A stretch of DNA of 64,000 nt. Source: Pavona decussata. Its lineage: Eukaryota. The notes below the pieces were generated by a model, which was not told where the DNA came from, did not search any database, and was given only the letters and a program-made list of their open reading frames with translations. The stretch spans positions 3,596,001-3,660,000 of the forward strand of contig CDRNST010000006.1 in NCBI GenBank assembly GCA_977016875.1, written 5' to 3'. Every line of letters starts with the position of its first letter. Positions within the stretch are counted from its first letter, which is position 1. The translations under genes were made by a program, and so were the position numbers. This document shows, one piece after another, positions 38,665 through 53,330 of this stretch.

Positions 38665-41600
38665 ATGGCGTTTAAAAGCACGTTAGTGTTCTTGTTCGCC
38701 TGCCAGCACATTTGCTGTGTTATGGCCGCCGAGTGTACCACGGCTATTATAGCTTCCATATTTGGAACGATCGGAGTGCTGCTTCTTATCGCTGCCATTG
38801 TGGCGCTTGCTTGGTATTGCTACAGGCGTCGACAGGCAGGTAAAAAATTGTTAACGGTGATGTTACTTACGAGGCTGTGCAAAACACTTTTTATTTTACC
38901 ACCAATTTTAAAGGGCGCTGCTCATATTATTCATTTTGTTTTTACAGCGTCATTTGCGTCCACATCTTCAGCCGACTCTGTTAGCGACCCTGAATTTTCC
39001 TTTGGTGGAAAGGCGAAAGGTGGTGACATTGGACTGGATGGAAGTGGAACACCTGTTACTTTTTCACACCACTACAGCGAAAAAGCACCTTCAGTTGGTA
39101 AGAAGCTGCAAATACAAGCCACGCAGTATACAATTACGAACAAAACATTCCTGTGATAGTTTTAAATAATTGTTTCGGATACACATTACGCTGCACGAAC
39201 TTTACTATTTAATATTCTTCGTCGACTCCTTTACCAGTCAACAGCAAAAGGTAAAAGTACATGTGTTTTCGTTTAGGAAATACCGAACAATTATTTGTCT
39301 TGCCGTGTCCACAGGCGTTGAGCTATAAGTCTTGTATTGGATTGCCTCCGTATTTATAAATGTAATGCAACAATAAACTTCGGAGCTATTTGTTGTTGAA
39401 GCGGCGCAAGCGATTAACAGCCACTTTATAACGCACTCAATTCCAGCTCATTCTTTATCTCTTTTGAAAAATTAGCTGCGTTTTTTAGCAGGGAAAACTG
39501 CCATGTTCTCGTATGGACAGAATGTATATTTTTACCATGCAGCAGTCAACCATGTCGACGTCTTTTCCAGTCAGTTCATGAGTTTTAAAATCCTTTTACC
39601 TGTCAGTTTGTCTTGTTCCTCGATGACATCAAAAAATTGGAGTATAAAACATTCCCGTAACTCACAAAAAAATCATTGACAGGTTTAATTTTCTAACAAC
39701 ACAAATCGCGCATAATTAAGAAGATTAGTAAGTGGATTATTTGCATAAAAACCACAACTCTTTTGCGAGATCACTCGAGCAGAGAAAACTTGAATAATCG
39801 AGAATGCACGTTGCAGTGAAGAACTGTTGATTATTTATCTCTTATCACGCACGGCATGTAATAAAACTACGTATCGCCTCTGGCAGTATTATATGATAAA
39901 TAAGGTTAGAAAATTTTCACAGATTTATTCTCCAGGAATGCAAACAAAATAAATATCAAATGAAATTATCAACAGTTTTCTTTGTACTGCTACATTTAAA
40001 AACCTCCATGTAGTTCTAAACATGTTTTGTTTCTTTGAACGCGTACAGCATGTAATGAACTACTGCCTCTGGCAATATTTTTTAACTTAATTTGAAATGA
40101 TTTATCACACACATCTCCAGGAATGTTTATAAAGTAATGGAATAAACCTGTGTGAGAATTTTCGTTAAACTAACAAAAGCTCATCCGGAATATTCTAAGG
40201 TTCTTAGTCTATCCACACACCGCATATCGGTCATATTTTCCGCATTGTGTCATTCCCTTTTAAATACTGTGACCTCTCGAAACAGATCATTCGCGTAAAG
40301 CGCAGAGAGTACTTAACATTCTCGAAAGCCACATAATTAAAGCTACTCTAGCTTTTAAACTTTTCTCTCTCTCAAATTTTCTAGAACAAACCCATCATTT
40401 ATCCATCCAAACTATTCGACAGAGCGCACTGATTAGGCGATGGCAGAACTGATCCGAACAATAAAGATAGCTTCCCATAAAACTTCAATATGTTTCAAGC
40501 TGTTTGCTGTTTGAATAGCCAAGCAGTTACCATTGTTTGCTCCCTTTTGTTTTTCAAAGTGGAAATCGACAAGTAATGGAAAAAAGGAACCTTTATTTTC
40601 CTTCAAAGACGCGATCGCCGTGATGTCAGGGCTGTGGATTTTTTTTACCCATTACGACGTAGTTTGTTGATCTTAAGAGTTCAAAAGTAATTGAAGTAAT
40701 AACAATACAAGTGGTAAAAAGAATGAAGAAAATTATCAACAAAAGCGGAAAATGTGTTGAAATTTGAACAATTTCTCATGATTAGTGCCATACAAAATTT
40801 ATAAAGTAAAAAATGGATTTTCACACTGATATAACAACGGCACTGGGTGTGAGCAATATCAAGGTGTTTGGTGGATGCAAACCGTCTTATGTAAATGTTT
40901 CATTTAGCGACTTGACAAAGAGTATAGTTCTTTGCTATTTGACTGCCCTCCAACGGTGAGCAAAATCCTGATGAGGACTGGATTAAACTTTTGAACGACA
41001 CAAGCATCGTGCAAGCAAGTCAGTTTGCGTTAATTTCAGTGATCCTTATGCGTGAGCCATACTAGCTGAAAGGCTCCCTTGGAATGGCGCATGTTTTACA
41101 AAAAGGCTTTTTATATTGAGCTATGTAATGACCATACGATTTAATTGCTCCTGTTGCTGCGGGGATATAAGGCCTCTAAGATTTTTTAAAAAAACCTTTT
41201 TAGTCTGTGTTTGCTTGTTTGTGTTCCGGCTGCGAGCGGTCTCTATTTCGTAGTTTTCGTTCGTATTTTTGCTACCTGCGATCATAGCACCAATTTCTGT
41301 TGTGTGTTTAATGTGTGCGAATGCTATGGCAGATTAATCGTTTACTGCAGTCGATTCGAGAAACAAAAATTGTCGGTTGTCACCTTGCTTTAAGCGTTTT
41401 TCTCTGAGTTTTCCGGTTTAACTGGCTAATCAAAAACCAACATTTCCAAATTCCATTTCGTATCGGATGTAGAGAACATGACTGTAAAACAACCTGCAAA
41501 GTATGTTGCTTTATTTAGAAGAATAATTCTCAGTTTCATCCATATGAACCTGAATTAATCGGCCTATTCCATGCATGGTAATGAGGAACTACGAGGACAT

Positions 41601-44600
41601 CTGAAGATTCGAGAAGATATTAGTAACAGCAAATTACAAATACATGGAGGAAGGTTTTGAAAAATAACTCGTGAAAGTGTCACTAGACTTTAAGAAGAGT
41701 TAGATAGTCAGTCTCTAAAATCGATTAAGTACTCTTCAGCTGAGGTGTTCAACTTTCAACTTACTTTAAATTTTTCAGAAATTATTACTGCTACCCGTAA
41801 ATAGCGAGAATTGCTAATGGTGGCGGGTGTGTGTGTGTGTGGTTTCGAACCTTATATGTTTAGGTGATTACATGAGCAAGTGGAAGACACTTGATGGCTC
41901 GTCCGTTATTTACTCTTCTTACTGGACAACGTATATTCTCAGATACGCCTCTTTAACTGTTGCGACTATCTTGTGGTAGCAAAGACCTATGTGCTTGATT
42001 ATATACGTACCTTTGTTGAGAGGAGATTTGTTTATTTTTTTGTAGCTCCCGCTGATTTGTTTTGTCTTGTCTACAAGAACAACTAATGTTCAGTGATGTT
42101 CAACGCCCAGATAACATCAGACTGCAAATTGATTCAATATAACAGACAGTATCGTATTGACTGTACAACAAGCTGTTTTAATTAAAAAAAAAAAAAAAAG
42201 AAACATTGGGCGGCTGTCTGAACAGCGTCCGTTCTCCTCTGAAAAACAGCATGAATCAGCCATATTGCATTTAACCTGCTTTTAGTGGAAAACAAACAGT
42301 TGTATGCTCAAGCTTTGCGTACCAATTTAAAAATCTGTGGAAACGAAAATAATTGGCACATTTTATTTGTAGTGAAAACATTTTTACTTACGATAAGAGG
42401 ACATATTTCAAAAAATTGTTCATCTTCACAGAGTTAGGCCCCAATCCACCCTAATGTGTTTTCAAAAGTGTCTGTTTTCATCTCGGCGAAAACGAAGCAA
42501 AATATTTTCATCCACACTAGCGTTTTCGAACCGAAAACTGAAATGCTTGGAAACGATGAAAACGACTGGAACCTGGGATTGCGCATGGTTAACATCACAA
42601 GACCATCCACCATCTTGGATAGATACTCCGATTTGGACTCTAACCGATGGCATGTGACGCTTTTTACTTCACCGTTTTCAAAAGTCTCCATTTTCACCTG
42701 TCCACACTAGAAAGGAAGTGTTTTCAAAAGTCTCCACTTTGAAACCATTTTTAAAAGTCTGTTTTTCATCGGCGTATTCTGGCGATTTAATGTGGACGAT
42801 AGGCAAACGAAAACGCACAAGAGGAACAGACCAAATTTCGGAAATATCAGATGCACCAAGGAGGCAATCGAACCCATGACCCCGCAATAGTACCGATGAT
42901 GCCCTGAGCTGAGGAGGAAAGCATGGTGGGCTAATTCGAATATTTGCTTTAGTGCTGGATAATCATTGTTCCCATGTTCAAATTAATCCACAGCTCTGGC
43001 TTCCTCGGTAGCTCAGCGGTTAGAGTATACGCCATGAGAAGGAGGTGTCATGGGTTCGATTTCACCTCAGGGTATTTGATTTTTCTGACATTTGTCCAAG
43101 ATTTCTTCTCTAAAGATGAATGTTTTCACTTTTTTGAAAATCTCTTTCACTGGGTGAAAATGAGAACAAATTGGCCGAGAGCCTCGTGCTTTCTGGCGAG
43201 AGCCATATTTGACATACTTGACAAACAAAGAACGGCAACCACGGTATGTGCATCTTAAATAACGCTTGCGTCATTTTAATATTGTTTTTACAGCTTACAA
43301 CACATCAGGTGTTGTAAATCCAGCATTTGGTGGCAGTCGTGAGTTTCTGATTGACATGCCTCCCGACAACAAAGGAGAAGTCAAAATTGATATGGAAGGA
43401 GATTCTTCAATGAGGCCTGCTGCTTATAACGGAGACGTCAAGATTGATATGAATGGGGAGTCAGACATTAAAACTCCTTCAGGTACGGGGAATGTAAAGT
43501 TGGATATGGAATGGGATCCTAGGAAAAATGTTGGTCTTCCAGATGGAAATCACGTGGAAACGAATCTTCCCGCTGTAAGTGGTCCTGCCATAGATCTTCC
43601 GGATGACAAACCTTCAGGAAGTTGTCTTCCAGGTGCTGATGCTGAAGTGATAATCAATGATCCTTCCAAGCCGAAGTTAGACATAGGAGGGGTGGGAAGT
43701 TTGGTAAGAAGATGTTATGATTCAGTTGTCTTTTTTTTTTTTTTTGAAGTGTTGTTTATTGAGTCGGGCGTAAAAATTGCACTGGAATTACAAGCCCCCT
43801 GATAGTGAATTTAATTCCCACCTGTTTTGGTAACAGCCTCGTTCGCTTGATATCTCTTTAAACAAAGTGACGCTAAGCTACGCTGTCAATCAGTACGTAG
43901 TCTTGTTAAAAAGAATCACATATTGTCTCCAAACCTCCGTTTAACCTGCTAAGTTAACTGATGCTCAGTCGGCAACACATCGTGTTGTTTATTGTCCTTT
44001 TTTATTATTGCTATTTTAAACCTCCAATTTGCATTAAGGTGTAGGTGATTAGTTTGAATATGTAGGCGATTGACATCCTTCATTTTTTCCTTTACTTCAA
44101 ATTCGTCGCCTTCCATGAACAGTCTGGAAAGAGTTTAAGAAATTGTACTAACTTAGGATAAGTTCAAGAAACGTTTATGAGGACGTCGCCTCTCAGAACA
44201 TGTTAAGTTAGTCGAACAGAAATGTAACCCTTACATCAGAGCGGAAACGGAATGGTCTGTAGACCCATTTGTTTTCCTTTTTTCCTATCAAAGAAAAGCG
44301 AAGACGTCTTTCTTGAGCGCCCTGGACGTGGGGGGTTTGGGTTGCTGATAGCGAGGGACAAAACCTTACCACCTCCTGCCTTGTTTGTTAGAGAAGTCAC
44401 TCCTGGCGGCATTGCAGCCAAAACAGGACGCATTGATAAAGGTCAGTAAAAACTAAATTCCTTGTGTAATGCTAATCGTAGTATAGTTTATCCCTGAAGT
44501 GGGCAAAATAATTTCTGTGAAGTTTGTAAATGCATAGCGAGATGACTGTTTCAAGCGAAAGATTGGACCAGGTTAAGATATAAGTGAAAGACAACCCTTG

Positions 44601-47600
44601 ACAGAGAGTTGTTATTGTTCAATCCTGATGCAGGACACAATGCAAAATTATTGATTGATTTTTTTGGTTTACATGTGGATTTCGAATTCGTCTCGTTCCA
44701 CTCGTTAATCAAGAAAATACCGAGGACAACATAGCCTATACTATACAGTCGAACCTCTTTATTATGGACCCCAAGGGGACAGGAATAAGTGTCGGTATTA
44801 TAGAGGTGTCCGTTTTAGAGAAATAGAATCTATATGGATTTTGGTCTCTCTGACACATAATGAACTGTCCGTAAGGAGAGGTTCCACTGTACTTAGTGCG
44901 TATAAGCTTGATAAATAAGATTTTTGTTATTTCCTCAAACAACAACAATAAAACACCTGAAAAAAGGACTCCGTGTGAGAGGACCGTTTTTGCAAATAAT
45001 CAGACAGCATAATTCAGTTAATCTGGACCTCAAACGTTTGTAGGTGACAAGATCGTGGGAATCAATGACGCCTCCATTGAGGGCATGCCCCACGATAAAG
45101 CCATGGAGCTTCTTCGAGATGACGAGAAACCAATGCTGCATCTAAAGCTACTGAAAAAGGCCCTGTATAGTGAAAAGGGTATGTAGTACTGTTAGCTTTG
45201 TTAAGAGTTGAAATCTGATAATGAGATGGTTAAGTGCGTAGTTGGAAAGATTTTCTCGTTAATATGGATGAAACACGTCAACGTCAATAGGAGCTACACC
45301 TTACATCTTTCGCTGATTTTTTTTATCATACAGATAGCTCATTTGAACTACCTGGAGGGTCCATGGAGGAGACCTGCAATGTCGAGTTAGAACCTGTGCT
45401 ACAAGCGGGAGTCCCGTCGGTAGATGTTGAAGGTATGCGACGTGACGCTCCTGATTTTGGATCAATGGACATTTCTGCGAGGAAGCCAAGAGTAAACATG
45501 AGTGAGCCTCAAGTGGATATGCCTGGAGGAACACTGAAAACGCCAATTTCTGATCCAAATGCATTTTCAGACGTTGATCTTAGTGGTCCATCGACTGGTT
45601 TGGATCTGCCTTCAACGAAAAAGAAGAGTGGTGGCTGCTTTTCCTGCGCATCGACTGGAGACAAAGAGGAGCCTTACAGCAAGGGCAGGGCAAACGCCGG
45701 ACTGTACTTAGACAGGCCAAACATGAAAACCGACCGAAAAGTTAAAGTGAGTGGGGCCCCTCCTGAAGTTTCTGTACCTTCGGCGAATACGGGTGGAACA
45801 CTTTCAGGACCGTCGGTAAATAGCGAAGATTTTGATTTTGATTCAAGCTGCCCAGATGTAGATACTTCTAAAAGACCAAAGGCGCATTTAGATACCAATA
45901 CCCCAAGTATTAAAACACCACAAGGCAATCTGGCGGCCCAAATCTCGCAGCCGGAAGTTGACCTTTCGACGGAAAAACGGCAAGCTCTGCAAGGAAAATT
46001 TGACGCCCTTCCTACCGAGCGAGACCTGCCGCCGAAAAAGAAAAAGAGTGGAAACTGTCTTTCGTGTATACGTGACATCAATAAAGACCAGCCCTACAGA
46101 AAGAGCAGAAAAAATGTTGATTTAGATATTGGTGGACCAGGTGGCTCAATGGAAATGAGCACTGGTGGGAAATTTGACCTTAGAGGATCTGGTCCTAGTA
46201 TTCAAGGAGCAGAGGGACGAATTCCACAGAAGGAATTGGGACTCCGTGCATCTGCCCCAGACAGAGATTTAGACGTCGATAAAGAACAAAACATTGACAC
46301 TTCTGCTCCAGATCTCTTCCCGCCTTCCTCAAGCGCAGAAATAAAGACCGGTAAACTTGACTTTGATGGATCTTGTCCTACGATTCAAGGAGCGGAAAGA
46401 AGACTTTCACAGAAGGAATTTGGACTCCGTGCTTCTGTCCCGGACGTAGATTTAGATGTCGATAAAGAACGAAATATTGACATATCCGGTCCTGATGCCT
46501 CCCTGCCCTCCTCAAGCGCAACTGCAAAGATTTCTAGGCCCTCTTTCGGTGGTGACGATGACTTTGAGCCTAACCTAGACTTTAAAGGAAGGAAACCAAA
46601 AGTAAAGATAGGCGCCAATGGTCAGGACTTCACAGCACCAGACCTGAGGCCAGAGATTGACGTTTCTTCCGATAAAACGAAGGATACTTCAGTGAAACTT
46701 GGTGCTCCATCTGCCCAAATGAATTTGCCTTCTTCAAAGAAAAAGCGTGGAAATTGTCTCAAATGTACAGGAACGGGTGGAAAAGAGGAACCTTACAGAA
46801 AGGCGAGTGATGTAGGATACACTTTCGATGAGCGCGAAGCGGATGGCTCTATTGAAATGAAAAAAATTGCTGGGCCTGGCTTTAATGTCCATGGAAGAGA
46901 AGGCGGTGTTTCTGGGCCCGAATCGGACGTCCTTGGTTCTGGTCCTGACTTTGGTGTCCAGGGATCGCATGCAGATGTTTCTAGACCCGACTATAATATC
47001 GGTAGACCGAATGTAAGATCTGACTTGGGAGTCCGTGGACCGAACGCCAATGTTTCTGGGTTGGATATCAGTGCACCAAAGACCAGTATTTCTGGGCCCA
47101 CATCCAGTATATCAGGGCCTGACTTAGATGTGCGTGAACCGAACGTGGGAATTTCTGGAGGAAAGCCGAAGATGGGATTAGACACAAACATCCCAAGCGT
47201 CAACGCACCAGAAGGAAAAATAGATACAAAAGTGTCTGGACCGAATGTCGACGTTTCAACAGGAAACATAAAGGACTCTAAAGTTACAGTCGATATGCCA
47301 TCTGCTGGAATACATTTGCCATCTAAGAAGGCGAAGGGTGGAAACTGCCTGTCATGCACATCTAGTCCTGACAAAGATGAGCCATATCGCACGAGTAAAG
47401 GAAATGCAGACTTTGCTTTCGACGGACCAGATGTTTACACGGAGGGACCTGACGCAGACATCGAAGGACTTAAGAGAAAAAGTGAAAACGCCTTTAATTT
47501 GAGCACCGATACACCAGGTACAGATAATCTCAACTTAGAAGAAGACGCAGGTATCTCTTTCACAAATGCGTCCTTCCCATCAACGAGTGGAAGGGGGGAA

Positions 47601-50600
47601 TTCGATGTGGGTGGCAGTGGACCTGACCTAGGTATTAGAACGAAAGCAACAGGTGTAGAATATGATGCGAACGGTCCAAAGCTCAAAAATCCAAAAGGGA
47701 AACTACAAACAGAAATATCTAGCCCAGGTGTTGATGTTTCGACTGGCAATGTCCAAGGCCCCCCCTCTGATGGACGCTTACCATCCAGAAAGAAGGCTCG
47801 CGGAAACTGTCTGTCGTGTGCAGGAGACGCGGATAAAGACGAACCATACGGAAAATCTTCAGCAAGTACTGAGTTTAAGCTCGAAAAACCAGACATTGAT
47901 GGATCTTTGAAAATAGAGGAAGGCGGCAAATTTGATCTTGATAAGCCTAGTGTCAGCATTAATGATCCAGATTTTGAAGGAGCTTCTCCAGTAATCGACC
48001 TCCCATCAGACAAGGCCAAAGTTGGCTTTAAGTCCCCTGAATTTGACATACCAAGCATCGAAGGAAACAGAGAAGTACAAATAACTAGACCAGGGTTATC
48101 CCACGGAAAACCAAAGATATCGGGACCTTCATTTGACCCAGGAGACAAAGAGTTTGCCATCGGGGGCCCAGACCTAGACATTGATACAGCACTGGGTGAA
48201 GGAAAATGGGGTGTTTCCAAGCCAGATATCGCAGGCCCCAAAGGCAAAATTGACCTTGATGCTAATAGACCGAGTGGTTGGGGGGAATTTGATGTTGGTG
48301 ACAGTGGACCTGACCTAGGTATTAGAACTAAAGCAACAGGTTTAGAATATGACGCGAACGGTCCAAAGCTCAAAAAGCCAAAAGGGAAACTACAAACAGA
48401 AATATCTAGCCCAGATGTTGATATTTCGACTGGCAATGTCCAAGGCCCCTCCTCTGATGGACGCTTACCATCCAGAAAGAAGGCTCGCGGAAACTGTCTG
48501 TCGTGTGCAGGAGACGCAGATAAAGACGAACCATACGGAAAATCTTCAGCAAGTACTGAGTTTAAGCTCGAAAAACCAGACATTGATGGATCTTTGAAAA
48601 TAGAGGAAGGCGGCAAATTTGATCTTGATAAGCCTAGTGTTAACATCAATGATCCAGATTTTGAAGGAGCTTCTCCAGACATCGACTTCCCATCAGACAA
48701 GGCCAAAGTTGGCTTTAAGTCCCCTGAATTTGACATACCAAGCATCGAAGGAAACAGAGAAGTACCAATAACTAGACCAGAGTTATCCCACGAAAAACCA
48801 AAGATATCGGGACCTTCATTTGACCCAGGAGACAAAGAGTTTGCCATCAGGGGCCCAGACCTAGACATTGATACAGCACTGGGTGAAGGAAAATGGGGTG
48901 TTTCCAAGCCAGATATCGCGGGCCCCAAAGGCGAAATTGACCTTGATGCCAATAGACCTAATCTGGATTCTGCAGCAACAGAACCTCAATTTGGAGTAAA
49001 AGGATTACACATTGACTCACCAGAACCAGATAACCATATAGGTGATCTCCGTTTCGGTGGCAGTTTACCAAAGATATCGGGACCTTCATTTGACCCAGGA
49101 GACAACGAGTTTGCCATCAGGGGCCCAGACCTAGACATTGATACAGCACTGGGTGAAGGAAAATGGGGTGTTTCCAAGCCAGATATCGCCGGCCCCAAAA
49201 GCAAAATTGACCTTGATGCTAATAGACCTGATCTGGATTCTGCAGCAACAGAACCTCAATTTGGAGTAAAAGGATTACACATTGACTCACCAGAACCAGA
49301 TAACCATACAGGTGATCTCCGTTTCGGTGGCAGTTTGCCAGATCTTGGTGTTTCTGAAAAGAAACCAGAAATTGGACTGGACAAAAAGGCAAATGGACCC
49401 GAAAGAAAACTAGACCTTGATTTCAAAAGACCTGGCTTAGATGTTTCGAAAACAAAACCACGATTTGAAGTAAAGGGGTTAGACACCGATACATCTGATC
49501 GAGACATCAGTGATGGTGATCTTGGTTTCACCGGCAGAATACCAGATCTTGGTTTATCGGGAAAGAAACCAGAAATTGAACTGGGTATGGATGGACCAGA
49601 TAAGAACGTAATAGAACCGACGGGAAAGTTTGATTTTGATGTCAATCGACCTGGTCTAGACGATTCAGGAACAAACCCACAATTTGGAATAAAAGGATTA
49701 GATATGAACACACCAGAGCCAGTCATACCTGCTGACAATCTCCGTTTTGGTACCAGTAAACCAGATGTCAATTGGGGAGTGAAGACCTCAACACCAAAAG
49801 TACCACAGCCATATCCTGAACTAGACGTAGAGACTAAACCTCTTGATGGTAACATATCGGTGGCTAACGACTATAACTTTGAACTTCAAAGCGCCCCAGA
49901 CACATTTCCTTCATTGGATTACGAGAAGCCACGAAGTCTTCAACGCTATGATGAGATTCGCCCCGACATGGAACTGAGACTGTTGCCTCCAAAAACGACG
50001 GAACACCCAGATAACAGGTTCGATTTTAACAGCAGTCTTGATATGGAACAGAGCGGTGAGCAACTTAAGCCTGGTGAGATGACTCTTGTTAAAGTTGAAG
50101 AAAATGTCACAGTCTGTTCAGCGTCAATTGAAGAAGATGATTCTCCTTCTCCAAGAAATAGGACATTGACTCTGGACCGAGAAATTAAACAACAAATTGA
50201 AGTTGTATTCCCAGAAGAAGAGGGCTCAAACGAAAAACGGAAGATTTCAAGCAGCTCATCTTCATCTTCCCCCTCTGATGCAGATGCTGATGGAGAGAAA
50301 CCTTCAAAGCGAAAGAAAAAATCGCGACTGCTTAAGGCATTCAGAAAAAGCTCAACGAGCTCAGCATCTTCCAAGGAAGATGGAAGTACAGTTAAGAAGA
50401 TAAGAACTAAAAGAAGGTCTTCAACAAGTTCTTCCTCATCCGACGACGAGAATAAAAGAAAAAAGGACACAAAGAAAGGTTCATCTACAGATGTGGCCCT
50501 TCCAACAGCGAGAACAGAACAGAAGAAGACAGCAGCAAGTTCGTCCTCTTCCTCATCAGATGAAGCACCAGATGTAGAAATCGTGAGCTCTATAAAACGT

Positions 50601-53330
50601 CCTGAACCAGATGTCTCCTTAGACGCTGTTACCACAGACACTCCGTCCCTACGAATAAAGACCGAGAAGCCAAAGGAACGAAAGGGTTCTACTAGCTCTT
50701 CGTCTTCGGATGAGGACACTGGAAAAGAGAATACTATTCAGAAAAAAGAACCAATAGAACGTAAATCTTCGACAAGCTCAACATCCTCGACAGACAAGGA
50801 CGACTCTAAGGATATAAAGGTTTCAAAACTAACTAACGCCGCTGATGGACCAGTGGTAAACATGCCTAAAACAGTGTCCCACACAGTTAAACCAACGGAC
50901 CCAGACCTAACGATTGGGTTGAAGAAACCAGAAGACAGCACAGAACCAAAACATCGGAAAACGTCTACAAGCTCTTCATCAGATGCAGAAGTGCCAACCA
51001 ACAAGATGGCTTCTGACGATTCTAAGCCATCGATGCTGTACCAAGTAGAGTACTTCACTAACCAGCAAACGTATATTATAGAACCACATGAAGATCTGGA
51101 TAATCCAGTTTTAAGTGTTGCAGATGTCCCTAAAGAGGAGTTCCATTCCGTTGATCCCAGAGACCCAGAGTTGTCGTTCATAAAACCATCGGAGCGTAAA
51201 AGGTCAACAAGTTCGTCATCTTCCTCGGACGAGGAAGCCACTGATAAAAAGAAAGAAGATCCAGTAAGAAAACGTTCAACAAGTTCTTCATCCTCAGACG
51301 ACAGTGGTCGTGTCTCTCCTAAACTAGACACAACATTATATAGGTATGAGACGGTGCACCATATTTTGACTCCCACTTACCCCTTTGTGGATCAAGCAAA
51401 CCCCAAAATAATACAGGAACATCCAGTGGTGGTCGTTTCTCGCTCCTTCAAGAATCCAGTATCAGAAAAAATAAGCACGGTAGCAGAAGACCAAGATGAA
51501 CCACAGAATGTGGAAACCCAGTTCAGTGAACCTTCAGTGGACATGACCCACCATCTTGAATATCCGTACAATATCCCAACAGTTAGAGCGGACAGTGACA
51601 AACACGCAAAAGAAAAAGATATTGTACCCGTCGTGAAATTAAAATCAGACTTCTTAGTTGAGTTGGAGCCGGACAAAAAACCGTCAGAAGATGAAGACAG
51701 CACTGAGCATTCGAAAACAGCTGGCAAAGAAGACCGCGATTCTCCTTCACTGAACATACAAGCACATACCTTTGAGACAGTGTACCACGTGAATATGCCA
51801 GAAAATCCAGCCGTGGATGGAGATAGCTTAGAAATTCGAGAACATTCACCCATTGTGGTGTCTCGTTCAAGAATCCAGAATCCAGTATCAGAAAATGTTA
51901 GCACGGCAGCAGACCAAGATGAACCACAGAATGCGGAAGTCCAGCTCAGTGAACCTCCAGTTGACATTACCCACCATCTTGAATATCCGTACAATATCCC
52001 AACAGTTAAAGCAGACAGTGACAAACACGCGAAAGAAGAAGATATTGTACCCGTCGTGAAATTAAAACCAGACTTCTTAGTTGAGTTAGAGCCGGACGAA
52101 AAACCATCAGACGACGAAGACAGCTCTGAGCATTCGAAAACAACTGGCAAAGAGCGGGATTCTCCTACACTGAACATACAAACACACACCTTTGAGACAG
52201 TGTACCACGTGAATATGCCAGAAAATCCATCCGTGGATGGCGATAGCTTAGAAATTCGAGAACATTCACCCATTGTGGTGTCTCGTTCTATTAAAAGAAT
52301 ATCTCTTGAAGATGTTGACCAAGAAGAGGAGCCTCCATTATTTACAACCAACACAGACGTTCAATTCAGTGAGCCTAGTAGTGACTTCCAACTGGAATAC
52401 CCAGAAGGAGACAACGTTTTCACCACTGGTGAACACGATTTGAAGATGACAGATGAAAAATGGATAGTGGGCCACTCATTACAAAAGGAGGAACCAGACA
52501 TCCCAGCCCTGGTAGCTTCACTTGACCGCCCTGCAGAAAAAACTCAGCCAACTAGTGATCCCAGTAGAGATGAAGGAGACAAAGCGACATCCCCTCGTGA
52601 GAAGAGTGCTAAGGATACGAGGAGACGAAGCTCTAACTCTCGCCTTTGGGAGTTGATGCAGGGATACTTAATAGAGAAACCCATCACAGACGACGATGAG
52701 ACTAAAGCTGATGACACAGAAGTGGAAGAATGTAAGGAAGAAATAGCTAAGCCAGAACCGAAAAAGGAAAAAATAGTATCTCGCGTATCCCTTAAACCTG
52801 CAAAATTCGAAACATTGAATGCTCCAGTTCAAGTTGTTGACAAAGAACCTGCAAAAGAGGTGATCACCTCAGGTCCGAAGGTGGACGATGTCTCAAAAGT
52901 AGTACCCAGTGTTTTACAAATTGATCCTGTCGCATTTCAAGTTGATCTTGGTGGCAAAAAGGCTGAAGTTAAAGAGCATGATGCTGAGTTGAGAAGACAA
53001 CCATCGCTTCCTGTAGATGAAGACGACAATGAAGATGATCCATGGATGAGGCACTATTCCAAAGGTCTTCAAAGAGGCCAGCGCCAGCCAGCATCTACAA
53101 AATCTCCAGAAAAAGAATCAGGCTTTAGCTTCTCTAAAGTACCACACGTGAGAGGAATAAGAACCTCTGCTGACAGGGAACGTGAAAGGCCGAAATATAC
53201 CATCGAGGGACTAACTCGGATAGAGCCAAGGGCTTCTCGAAGCAGCACAGGACAAGACCAGGCTAGGAAAAACATAGACGAGGTTGGTAGACAATCGGTC
53301 AGCAGTTTACGTTCCTTTTGGGATAAATAA
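38665..53330 (+). CDS. Giant single-pass membrane protein with PDZ domain and AHNAK/periaxin-like repetitive tail (~3004 aa)
   Basis: Exons 38665-38839, 38948-39097, 43294-43703, 44294-44441, 45044-45178, 45334-53330; all GT-AG and phase-compatible; 9015 nt in total. Signal peptide plus TM (AIIASIFGTIGVLLLIAAIVALAWYCY-RRR). PDZ: RPGRGGFGLLI..LFVREVTPGGIAAKTGRIDKGDKIVGIND..HDKAMELLR. Confidence 0.85.
39100..40263 (+). repeat. ~1.15-kb interspersed repeat, copy 2 (intron 2 of PDZ gene)
   Basis: Same family as 24593-25568 with ~170 extra nt around 39620-39795. Confidence 0.8.
42436..42810. mobile_element. Partial Harbinger-type MITE
   Basis: ggcccca.tccac start with recurring tccacacta..gttttc(a/g)aa motifs. 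The right end is incomplete. Confidence 0.5.
42829..43097. mobile_element. Inverted pair of tRNA-derived SINE-like heads
   Basis: The + head at 42998 has A box TAGCTCAGCGG and B box GGTTCGATTTC. A diverged mirror copy lies on the minus strand at 42829-42922. Confidence 0.6.
44746..44889. mobile_element. Tc1/mariner-type MITE
   Basis: TA|CAGTCGAACCTCT ... AGAGGTTCCACTG|TA. Confidence 0.8.
47584..48957 (+). repeat. In-frame 687-bp (229-aa) tandem duplication in giant exon
   Basis: Near-identical units offset by 687 nt, followed by a 270-nt duplication (48798 vs 49068). Confidence 0.92.
51450..52290 (+). repeat. In-frame ~423-bp tandem duplication in giant exon
   Basis: NPVSE...HHLEYPYNIPTV...HTFETVYHVNMPENP...REHSPIVVSRS occurs twice. 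Confidence 0.9.

Follow-up and report, generated by a model that had tools for sequence, protein, structure and literature searches.

AHNAK proteins rank among the largest vertebrate proteins, and periaxin, a scaffold of the membrane cortex, is encoded by small exons that specify an N-terminal PDZ domain, with a large last exon coding for Pro/acidic/basic repeats. In vertebrate AHNAK, a PDZ lies at the N-terminus and the repeats are encoded by one giant exon that comes after small 5′ exons, with repeat units of 128 aa in AHNAK and 165 aa in AHNAK2; AHNAK proteins have been linked to the repair of membranes, the regulation of calcium channels and the architecture of the cell cortex, and PRX combines a PDZ with a cytoskeletal and myelin role (PMC10682155). 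The same review does not mention any transmembrane (TM) region (PMC10682155). In corals, AtAHNAK (aten_s0052.g99.t1) of Acropora tenuis was detected by reverse transcription PCR (RT-PCR) in planulae, and an antibody against it stains TUBB3-positive neuron-like cells of the aboral ectoderm; the paper is silent on both a TM segment and a PDZ (Kawamura et al. 2025, PMC11997738). Our search of the literature for AHNAK in combination with coral or Nematostella did not yield any report of a membrane anchor. Here, we analysed a stretch of 64,000 nucleotides from the coral Pavona decussata (assembly GCA_977016875.1, contig CDRNST010000006.1, positions 3,596,001 to 3,660,000; hereafter the window), in which six exons on the + strand, between positions 38665 and 53330, encode a giant protein with AHNAK-like repeats. 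The gene is a single-copy ortholog in a hexacorallian family named ‘AHNAK’ or ‘AHNAK-like’ by RefSeq, and its product is, overall, best explained as a membrane-anchored scaffold and a true homolog of vertebrate AHNAK, a reading that we consider probable. The automatic RefSeq name and the marker use in one paper (PMC11997738) were already known; the TM architecture of this probable branch of the AHNAK family was described in none of the papers searched.

Concatenation of the six exons gives a conceptual coding sequence of 9,015 nt, i.e. 3,004 aa, with no internal stop, and the introns are all of the GT-AG type with polypyrimidine tracts and compatible phases (1, 1, 0, 1, 1). The largest open reading frame (ORF; 45363–53330, 2,655 aa) lies in the giant exon and contains the strings GPDLDV, PDVDISTG and KPKISGP, in line with the AHNAK-like repeat texture noted in the first-pass annotation of this DNA. 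The gene layout that it described is also confirmed, with five small 5′ exons preceding an exon of 7,997 nt, as in vertebrates (PMC10682155). A second ORF of 163 aa begins at 38665 on the + strand. The TM helix and the PDZ sit in the small 5′ exons, and an ORF track taken alone misses this N-terminus, as had been pointed out. The donor of exon 1 reads G|GTAAAA, and an AATAAA/ATTAAA hexamer is found 17 nt 3′ of the stop codon. With the queries used, the gene is present as a single copy in the 602-Mb assembly. Database searches were performed with exons queried singly, annotated orthologs standing in for the spliced product, and the joined exons served solely for a local check of frame, stops and hydropathy. 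All close homologs are coral proteins, a word search with the giant-exon ORF recovering 46 coral clusters. AtAHNAK belongs to them: the peptide used to raise its antibody is found exactly in P0045 and with two mismatches in A. palmata, and since this peptide maps to the present coral family, AtAHNAK is an ortholog. AtAHNAK and the RefSeq ‘AHNAK-like’ proteins of A. millepora, A. palmata and Montipora capricornis share the N-terminal architecture and match over the giant exon at E = 0, but the Acropora and Montipora orthologs are only 27–30% identical in that exon, are longer (3,868–4,231 aa) and carry 11–18 CxxC modules versus 6.

We then considered the N-terminus. From the ATG at 38665, the protein reads MAFK, a hydrophobic stretch ending in VMA|AECTT, a 27-residue hydrophobic helix and RRRQ. 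Across the 3,004 aa, the hydropathy threshold is passed by one segment only, located between residues 6 and 54 (KD19 peaks at 2.77, at aa 28, and reaches at most 0.99 elsewhere), every cnidarian member displays one hydrophobic segment of KD19 2.3–2.8, and fish AHNAK, in contrast, has none (maximum KD19 0.59–0.76). Invariant across coral families are the E-C-T of the ~5-residue ectodomain, the helix core A-S-V-F-G-T-x-G and a W-Y-x-C boundary, and the small residues at −3/−1 of the predicted cleavage site are conserved among relatives (V-M-A|A, A-A-S|E, V-Q-G|A). The signal peptide, the TM helix and the almost absent ectodomain proposed by the first-pass annotation are thereby recovered, the first as a predicted feature, the second as the only membrane-grade segment and the third as ~5 residues with a conserved Cys. 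The hydrophobic region (h-region) of the first stretch spans ~15–17 residues in corals, at 4–5 residues from the TM helix, and ~9–10 residues in Nematostella; the latter is too short for a bilayer and therefore supports a cleaved signal peptide. The NPAF motif, previously described as juxtamembrane, is present in exon 3, but the 50-residue exon 2 separates it from the TM helix, so that it is not juxtamembrane in the strict sense.

The link to vertebrate AHNAK comes from the sea anemone Nematostella vectensis. We compared 1.84 billion representatives with a profile of the first 470 residues of four coral models; its matches were mostly multi-PDZ proteins, the informative ones being single-exon coral ORFs and P0142 (XP_048586500.1), the 4,189-aa N. 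vectensis ‘neuroblast differentiation-associated protein AHNAK’. This protein resembles that of the corals in its short signal peptide and ~5-residue ectodomain A-C-T-T-E, in its TM helix (55% identity over 33 aa, E = 3e-11), in its PDZ region (33% over 126 aa, E = 5e-20), in its DDPWMRHY...SKIPHV block (42% over 67 aa, E = 5e-9) and in its giant exon of 9.6 kb; its first PDZ is interrupted by an intron at the same position, the exon ending with ...V-L-E-R-G. It differs in having two PDZ domains and two extra 3′ exons, in lacking NPAF and in ending with -F-T-E-I, of the class I PDZ-ligand type, versus -S-F-W-D-K in corals; binding of the C-terminus to its own PDZ, in cis or in trans, is conceivable in the anemone only. 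K-rich-CC-...-Y-S-Y modules behind each PDZ are related to the coral modules, with CC instead of CxxC and in just 2–3 copies. The window protein displays the traits of this family, namely signal peptide, x-E/A-C-T-T, TM helix, split PDZ, Cys modules and DDPWMRHY...SK[VI]PHV. The comparison shows that the predicted membrane anchor is at least hexacorallian-wide.

The Nematostella repeats are much nearer to those of vertebrate AHNAK than the coral repeats are. They score 502 bits against the repeats of fish AHNAK, with a best stretch of 165 bits and reversed or shuffled controls at or below 0, and the alignment is collinear over ~700–900 residues (e.g. G-P-G-W-K-F-K-G-P-K-M-P-K-F versus G-P-K-G-G-F-K-M-P-K-F). 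The coral repeats reach vertebrate AHNAK directly as well: outside corals, the word search matched just two fish AHNAK clusters (E = 7.6e-38 and 1.7e-15). Since repeat proteins inflate scores, the following comparisons were accompanied by controls with the reversed, the window-shuffled and the fully shuffled sequence. The coral repeat half scored 164 and 87 bits with phmmer (controls at ~0 or below) and 178 bits with BLASTP (controls ≤28 bits) against fish AHNAK, and a hidden Markov model (HMM) of the repeat unit built from corals only, answering the repeat comparison suggested earlier, scored 807 and 397 bits, the best control stretch reaching 9 bits. With native scores high and controls near zero, the similarity depends on the order of residues. 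Vertebrate AHNAK and AHNAK2 thus resemble the coral protein in their G/P/D/K-rich repeats with order-specific similarity, and also in a Ser-rich C-terminal part. As the Nematostella protein ties the coral TM helix, PDZ and C-terminus to vertebrate-type repeats, homology is the better reading, and, on these sequence comparisons, we regard homology to vertebrate AHNAK as reasonably likely.

The PDZ itself is well defined. Pfam PF00595 matches exon 4 over positions 2–43 (19.3 bits) and exon 5 over positions 47–80 (23.4 bits), and the intact domain of the Montipora ortholog (P0006) scores 50.1 bits. A phase-1 intron splits it in the Gly codon preceding D-K-I-V-G-I-N, with the same break in three other coral assemblies (L001–L003, D-[KE]-[IV]-[IV]-G-I-N). 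The canonical appearance attributed to this domain, with its GFGL loop, holds (R-G-G-F-G-L). Helix αB begins with a His (M-P-H-D-K-A), and a His at this position is typical of class I PDZ domains.

Several results weigh against the picture of a membrane-anchored AHNAK homolog. The best matches of the coral PDZ are LIN-7B (47 bits), PTPN13 (42 bits) and also DLG4, with the fish AHNAK PDZ at 24 bits, and PRX and AHNAK2 are not among its best 60 PDB matches. The fish AHNAK PDZ, in contrast to the canonical coral domain, is of the divergent AHNAK/PRX subtype; it matches periaxin (4CMZ) and AHNAK2 (4CN0) first, and fish AHNAK is therefore a genuine member of that family. A quick maximum-likelihood (ML) tree was built from 118 PDZ domains; in it, the cnidarian clade (support of 97 in the Shimodaira–Hasegawa-like approximate likelihood ratio test, SH-aLRT) and the fish AHNAK clade (96) both fall within one unresolved group of 24 rows and are not sisters; the PDZ phylogeny proposed in the first-pass annotation thus gives neither a robust grouping with an unrelated family nor a grouping with AHNAK/PRX. 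On these comparisons, the coral PDZ gives no AHNAK-specific signal. A scan of this coral's genome with the fish AHNAK PDZ as query gave no candidates at its initial filter and carries no weight either way. Outside the repeats, no similarity to AHNAK was seen: the BLASTP high-scoring segment pair (HSP) of the whole exon versus fish AHNAK falls in the repeat half, and the C-terminal comparison returned no match. The direct coral–AHNAK similarity rests on a short reiterated S-G-P-D-x-D-x element of ~9 residues, whose repetition multiplies the score; as the consensus is such a reiterated element, the coral–fish similarity alone would also be compatible with convergence. Regarding the N-terminus, signal-peptide cleavage and topology are rule-based readings, NPAF is retained in most corals but absent in Acropora and Nematostella, and an AlphaFold2 (AF2) model covering the first 470 aa of the Montipora ortholog, computed from a 4-row alignment, is unusable (mean predicted local distance difference test, pLDDT, of 31.5). 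Finally, the joining of the exons draws on conservation and on annotated models from other species, and a function as membrane-tethered cortical scaffold, with putative S-acylation, dimerisation, PDZ ligands and location, is what we infer from sequence features.

These points bear mostly on the choice, left open by the first-pass annotation, between an early-branching homolog and a convergent analog. If convergent, the gene would encode a cnidarian-specific TM-PDZ scaffold in which low-complexity G/P/D/K repeats reached AHNAK-like motifs independently, and which would share with AHNAK the generic PDZ fold only. Besides the behavior of the PDZ and the ~9-residue periodicity of the coral unit, this alternative is favored by repeat units that measure 61, 90 and 229 aa instead of the 128 or 165 aa of AHNAK and AHNAK2, by CxxC modules, a TM helix and C-terminal motifs that the fish AHNAK proteins checked lack, and by the fact that word and profile searches did not find intermediates from other phyla. 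It has to accommodate, however, a similarity that is lost upon reversal or local shuffling, the long collinear alignment between Nematostella and fish AHNAK, and the common layout of small 5′ exons, N-terminal PDZ and giant repeat exon (PMC10682155). We consider it unlikely on balance, the choice leaning toward a homolog through the Nematostella protein, with a PDZ that shows no specific affinity for AHNAK as the part that does not follow.

The inferred joining of exons 1–6 into one gene is well supported. The order TM exon, Ser-rich exon, NPAF exon, PDZ-a, PDZ-b and start of the giant exon is kept upstream of the giant ORF in the coral assemblies L001, L002 and L003 (tblastn), with exon identities of 52–90% (60–78% for exon 1, 52–65% for exon 3, 76–90% for exon 4 and 68–84% for exon 5). 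A further assembly, L005, is ~90% identical over the whole locus, with the same six-exon order: the six exons align with 0 indel columns at 94.7–99.3% identity, whereas introns and 5′ flank accumulate 341 indel columns at 89.5–93.5% identity. Exon 2 is 99.3% identical to its L005 counterpart without indels, and P0006, P0040, P0062 and P0056 all carry the exon 2 peptide between the TM and NPAF parts. The 30 synonymous and 24 non-synonymous codon differences with L005 are indicative of purifying selection. TM helix, linker, PDZ and giant region are joined in five annotated coral models from three pipelines (Table 1), and the profile search also matched stand-alone NPAF-exon ORFs of other corals (P0104, P0109, P0114, P0158). 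The separate transcript for exons 1–3 that the first-pass annotation had envisaged is thus opposed by the six-part order in four assemblies and by the five joined models. A split locus, with exons 1–3 encoding a small membrane protein and the PDZ and giant exon a soluble AHNAK-like product from its own promoter, could start from in-frame ATGs at 44252 or 45363, and alternative products are plausible given that vertebrate AHNAK loci yield small and large isoforms (PMC10682155). We nevertheless find it very improbable: exon 3 ends in phase 0 at a GTAAGA donor without a stop and exon 4 opens in phase 0, order and phases are kept across five coral genomes, the Nematostella RefSeq model joins the parts as the five coral models do, and the ATG at 44252 sits inside the polypyrimidine tract of the acceptor.

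A different topology, in which an uncleaved first stretch forms a two-helix hairpin or a type II signal-anchor puts the giant region on the luminal or extracellular side, could be drawn from the fairly long coral h-region, the short gap to the TM helix and the rule-based nature of the present assignment, but is hardly credible given the conserved small residues at −3/−1, the Nematostella h-region that cannot cross a bilayer, the larger net charge after the helix (RRRQ; CRKR/KHRQ in orthologs), a giant region that even the hairpin would put in the cytosol, and the typically cytosolic occurrence of PDZ domains, poly-Ser/acidic runs and polybasic-Cys motifs.

Following the anchored, cytosol-facing arrangement, the product would be a type I membrane protein that, once its signal peptide is removed, exposes ~5 extracellular residues with one conserved Cys. 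The TM helix, with small-xxx-small positions (A-S-V-F-G-T-I-G), would fix the N-terminus in the plasma membrane, possibly allowing dimerisation via the helix and the extracellular Cys, or association with a specific partner in the membrane, and the juxtamembrane Cys and the basic stop-transfer would leave the remainder in the cytoplasm. There, a Ser-rich linker, the NPAF exon and the PDZ would be followed by ~1,500 aa of repeats with six Cys modules, and by a Ser/acidic part of ~1,100 aa ending with DPWMRHY, SKVPHV and SFWDK. The PDZ may bind C-terminal tails of membrane proteins, and the polybasic-Cys modules may re-anchor the repeat region at the inner leaflet by charge and probably S-acylation, with zinc-bridged pairing as an alternative role for the CxxC motifs; the Ser/acidic half is likely a phospho-regulated platform. 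LAT, PAG/Cbp and NTAL similarly have a minimal ectodomain, a juxtamembrane Cys motif (CxxC) for acylation and, in the cytosol, a long disordered tail bearing acidic Tyr motifs. This is a functional analogy only, with no sequence relation claimed: these adaptors have neither a PDZ nor AHNAK-type repeats and are ~10 times smaller. Periaxin is alike in layout, but has no TM segment, and its PDZ is of the AHNAK2/PRX subtype.

If the coral gene is a homolog, the AHNAK family would reach back to the cnidarian–bilaterian ancestor, with the plasma membrane as its original workplace. A more speculative extension, which we consider doubtful, is that AHNAK was originally an integral membrane protein. In the eumetazoan ancestor, it would have combined a signal peptide, a near-zero ectodomain with a dimerising Cys, a sequence-specific TM helix and a giant repeat region held along the inner leaflet by serial polybasic, S-acylated Cys modules; in vertebrates, the TM exon and these modules would have disappeared, with indirect membrane recruitment taking their place. 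If this is true, the cnidarian protein would represent the first ‘hard-wired’ giant cortical scaffold from nature, through which the role of AHNAK repeats at membranes could be approached directly. The single-copy coral gene would also offer a simpler system in which to study repeat function, its Acropora ortholog being already reported in neuron-like larval cells (PMC11997738). In practice, ORF-level calls miss the N-terminus of such genes, and the name is wrong for at least one model in the databases (Desmophyllum ‘lin-7 C’). The coordinates of the features are collected in Table 1.

Table 1. Exons and features of the AHNAK-like gene (positions in the window), and annotated coral models in which its parts are joined
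Feature	Position	Strand	Description
Exon 1	38665..38839	+	ATG; predicted cleavable signal peptide aa 1–21; ~5-residue ectodomain AECTT; TM helix ~aa 27–53; juxtamembrane Cys; RRRQ stop-transfer; end phase 1
Exon 2	38948..39097	+	Ser-rich, presumed cytosolic linker SFASTSSADSVSDPEFSFGGKAKGG...SEKAPSV; 150 nt; phase 1 at both ends; acceptor and donor read
Exon 3	43294..43703	+	YNTSGVVNPAF motif, then short GDVKIDM-type D/K-rich repeats; end phase 0
Exon 4	44294..44441	+	N-terminal PDZ half with carboxylate-binding loop R-G-G-F-G-L
Exon 5	45044..45178	+	C-terminal PDZ half; helix αB opens with M-P-H-D-K-A
Exon 6	45334..53330	+	Giant terminal coding exon, 7,997 nt; acceptor 45332–45333, in frame with exon 5; stop TAA 53328–53330
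AHNAK-like repeat half	45363..50040	+	G/D/S/P/K-rich, ~ORF aa 1–1,560; ~19 matches of a ~90-aa unit built on SGPD-x-D-x elements; unit HMM aa 18–1467
Six polybasic-CxxC-acidic-Tyr modules	45606–45686, 46026–46106, 46725–46805, 47316–47396, 47778–47858, 48465–48545	+	L-P-S-x-K-K-K-x-G-N-C-[LF]-S-C ... D-K-D-E-P-Y
Recent internal duplications	47584..49803	+	687-nt unit x2 (96%), 270-nt unit x3 (68–97%), 190-nt family x4
Ser/acidic-rich region	50064..51318	+	S runs, then D/E, with K/R flanks; CK2-type phospho-acceptor texture; Ser >20% in 100-aa windows
Duplicated ~140-aa C-terminal segment	51483..52288	+	HHLEYPYNIPTV...; 92–95% DNA identity between copies
Conserved C-terminal motifs	53037..53327	+	DDPWMRHY 53037–53057, FSFSKVPHV 53124–53150, terminal SLRSFWDK 53304–53327
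Joined models			Montipora capricornis, Acropora palmata, A. millepora (RefSeq); Porites lobata CAH3167575.1; Desmophyllum pertusum (truncated); ids P0006, P0040, P0042, P0062, P0056

The repeat half of the giant exon is rich in five residues (G12 D11 S10 P10 K9), and only 23 full-length matches of the repeat unit were counted, which makes a shallow alignment. Its duplication units of 183, 270 and 687 nt correspond to the 61, 90 and 229 aa mentioned above, and the AHNAK-type unit of 128 or 165 aa was not matched. The six modules contain 12 of the 17 Cys of the giant exon; polybasic-CxxC-DEPY copies number 4–19 in coral orthologs and 0 in the two fish AHNAK proteins checked, in which no C-terminal similarity to the coral protein was detected either. 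The C-terminal motifs DDPWMRHY, FSFSKVPHV and SLRSFWDK are kept in all coral orthologs inspected. Pfam searches with the giant exon in three pieces returned nothing above noise, and an ESM Atlas feature search with the C-terminal 376 aa gave a best score of 0.83, which is at noise level. Marks for PF22430 (Ago N) and PF21300 (ice-binding beta-roll) on orthologs were discarded as spurious, being short or sub-threshold matches in repeats.

Other observations concern the locus and its relatives. Skipping of exon 2 would keep the frame and set YNTSGVVNPAF right behind the TM helix, a candidate alternative isoform. Within intron 2, positions 42430–42820 hold a ~390-bp dispersed repeat resembling a short interspersed nuclear element or a miniature inverted-repeat transposable element (SINE/MITE-like), for which a first look gave 331 candidates in the same genome, the 40 of them that were scored being 78–88% identical and spread over many contigs; this repeat accounts for the small ORFs present there on both strands. 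On the minus strand, long antisense ORFs cover the giant exon between 45674 and 52354 (up to 505 aa, 47435–48952) with no supporting homolog; apparently they arise from the biased base composition of the repeat exon, in which the AT skew reaches 0.27. In L003, positions 6162–7418 and 7680–10063 carry a tandem duplicate of the PDZ exon pair and of the start of the giant exon, a situation comparable to the double PDZ in Nematostella. The downstream neighbor gene of the coral locus L001 is absent from the window, and a run of N at 5714–5842 corresponds to an assembly gap or a masked stretch. In Desmophyllum pertusum, the 566-aa ‘Protein lin-7 C’ (P0056) is the misnamed N-terminus of this AHNAK-like family and the 515-aa ‘Hypothetical protein OS493_018112’ (P0119) is a piece of the giant region; both lie on a contig of 2,292,076 bases, and the gene appears to be split and misnamed in the deposited annotation.

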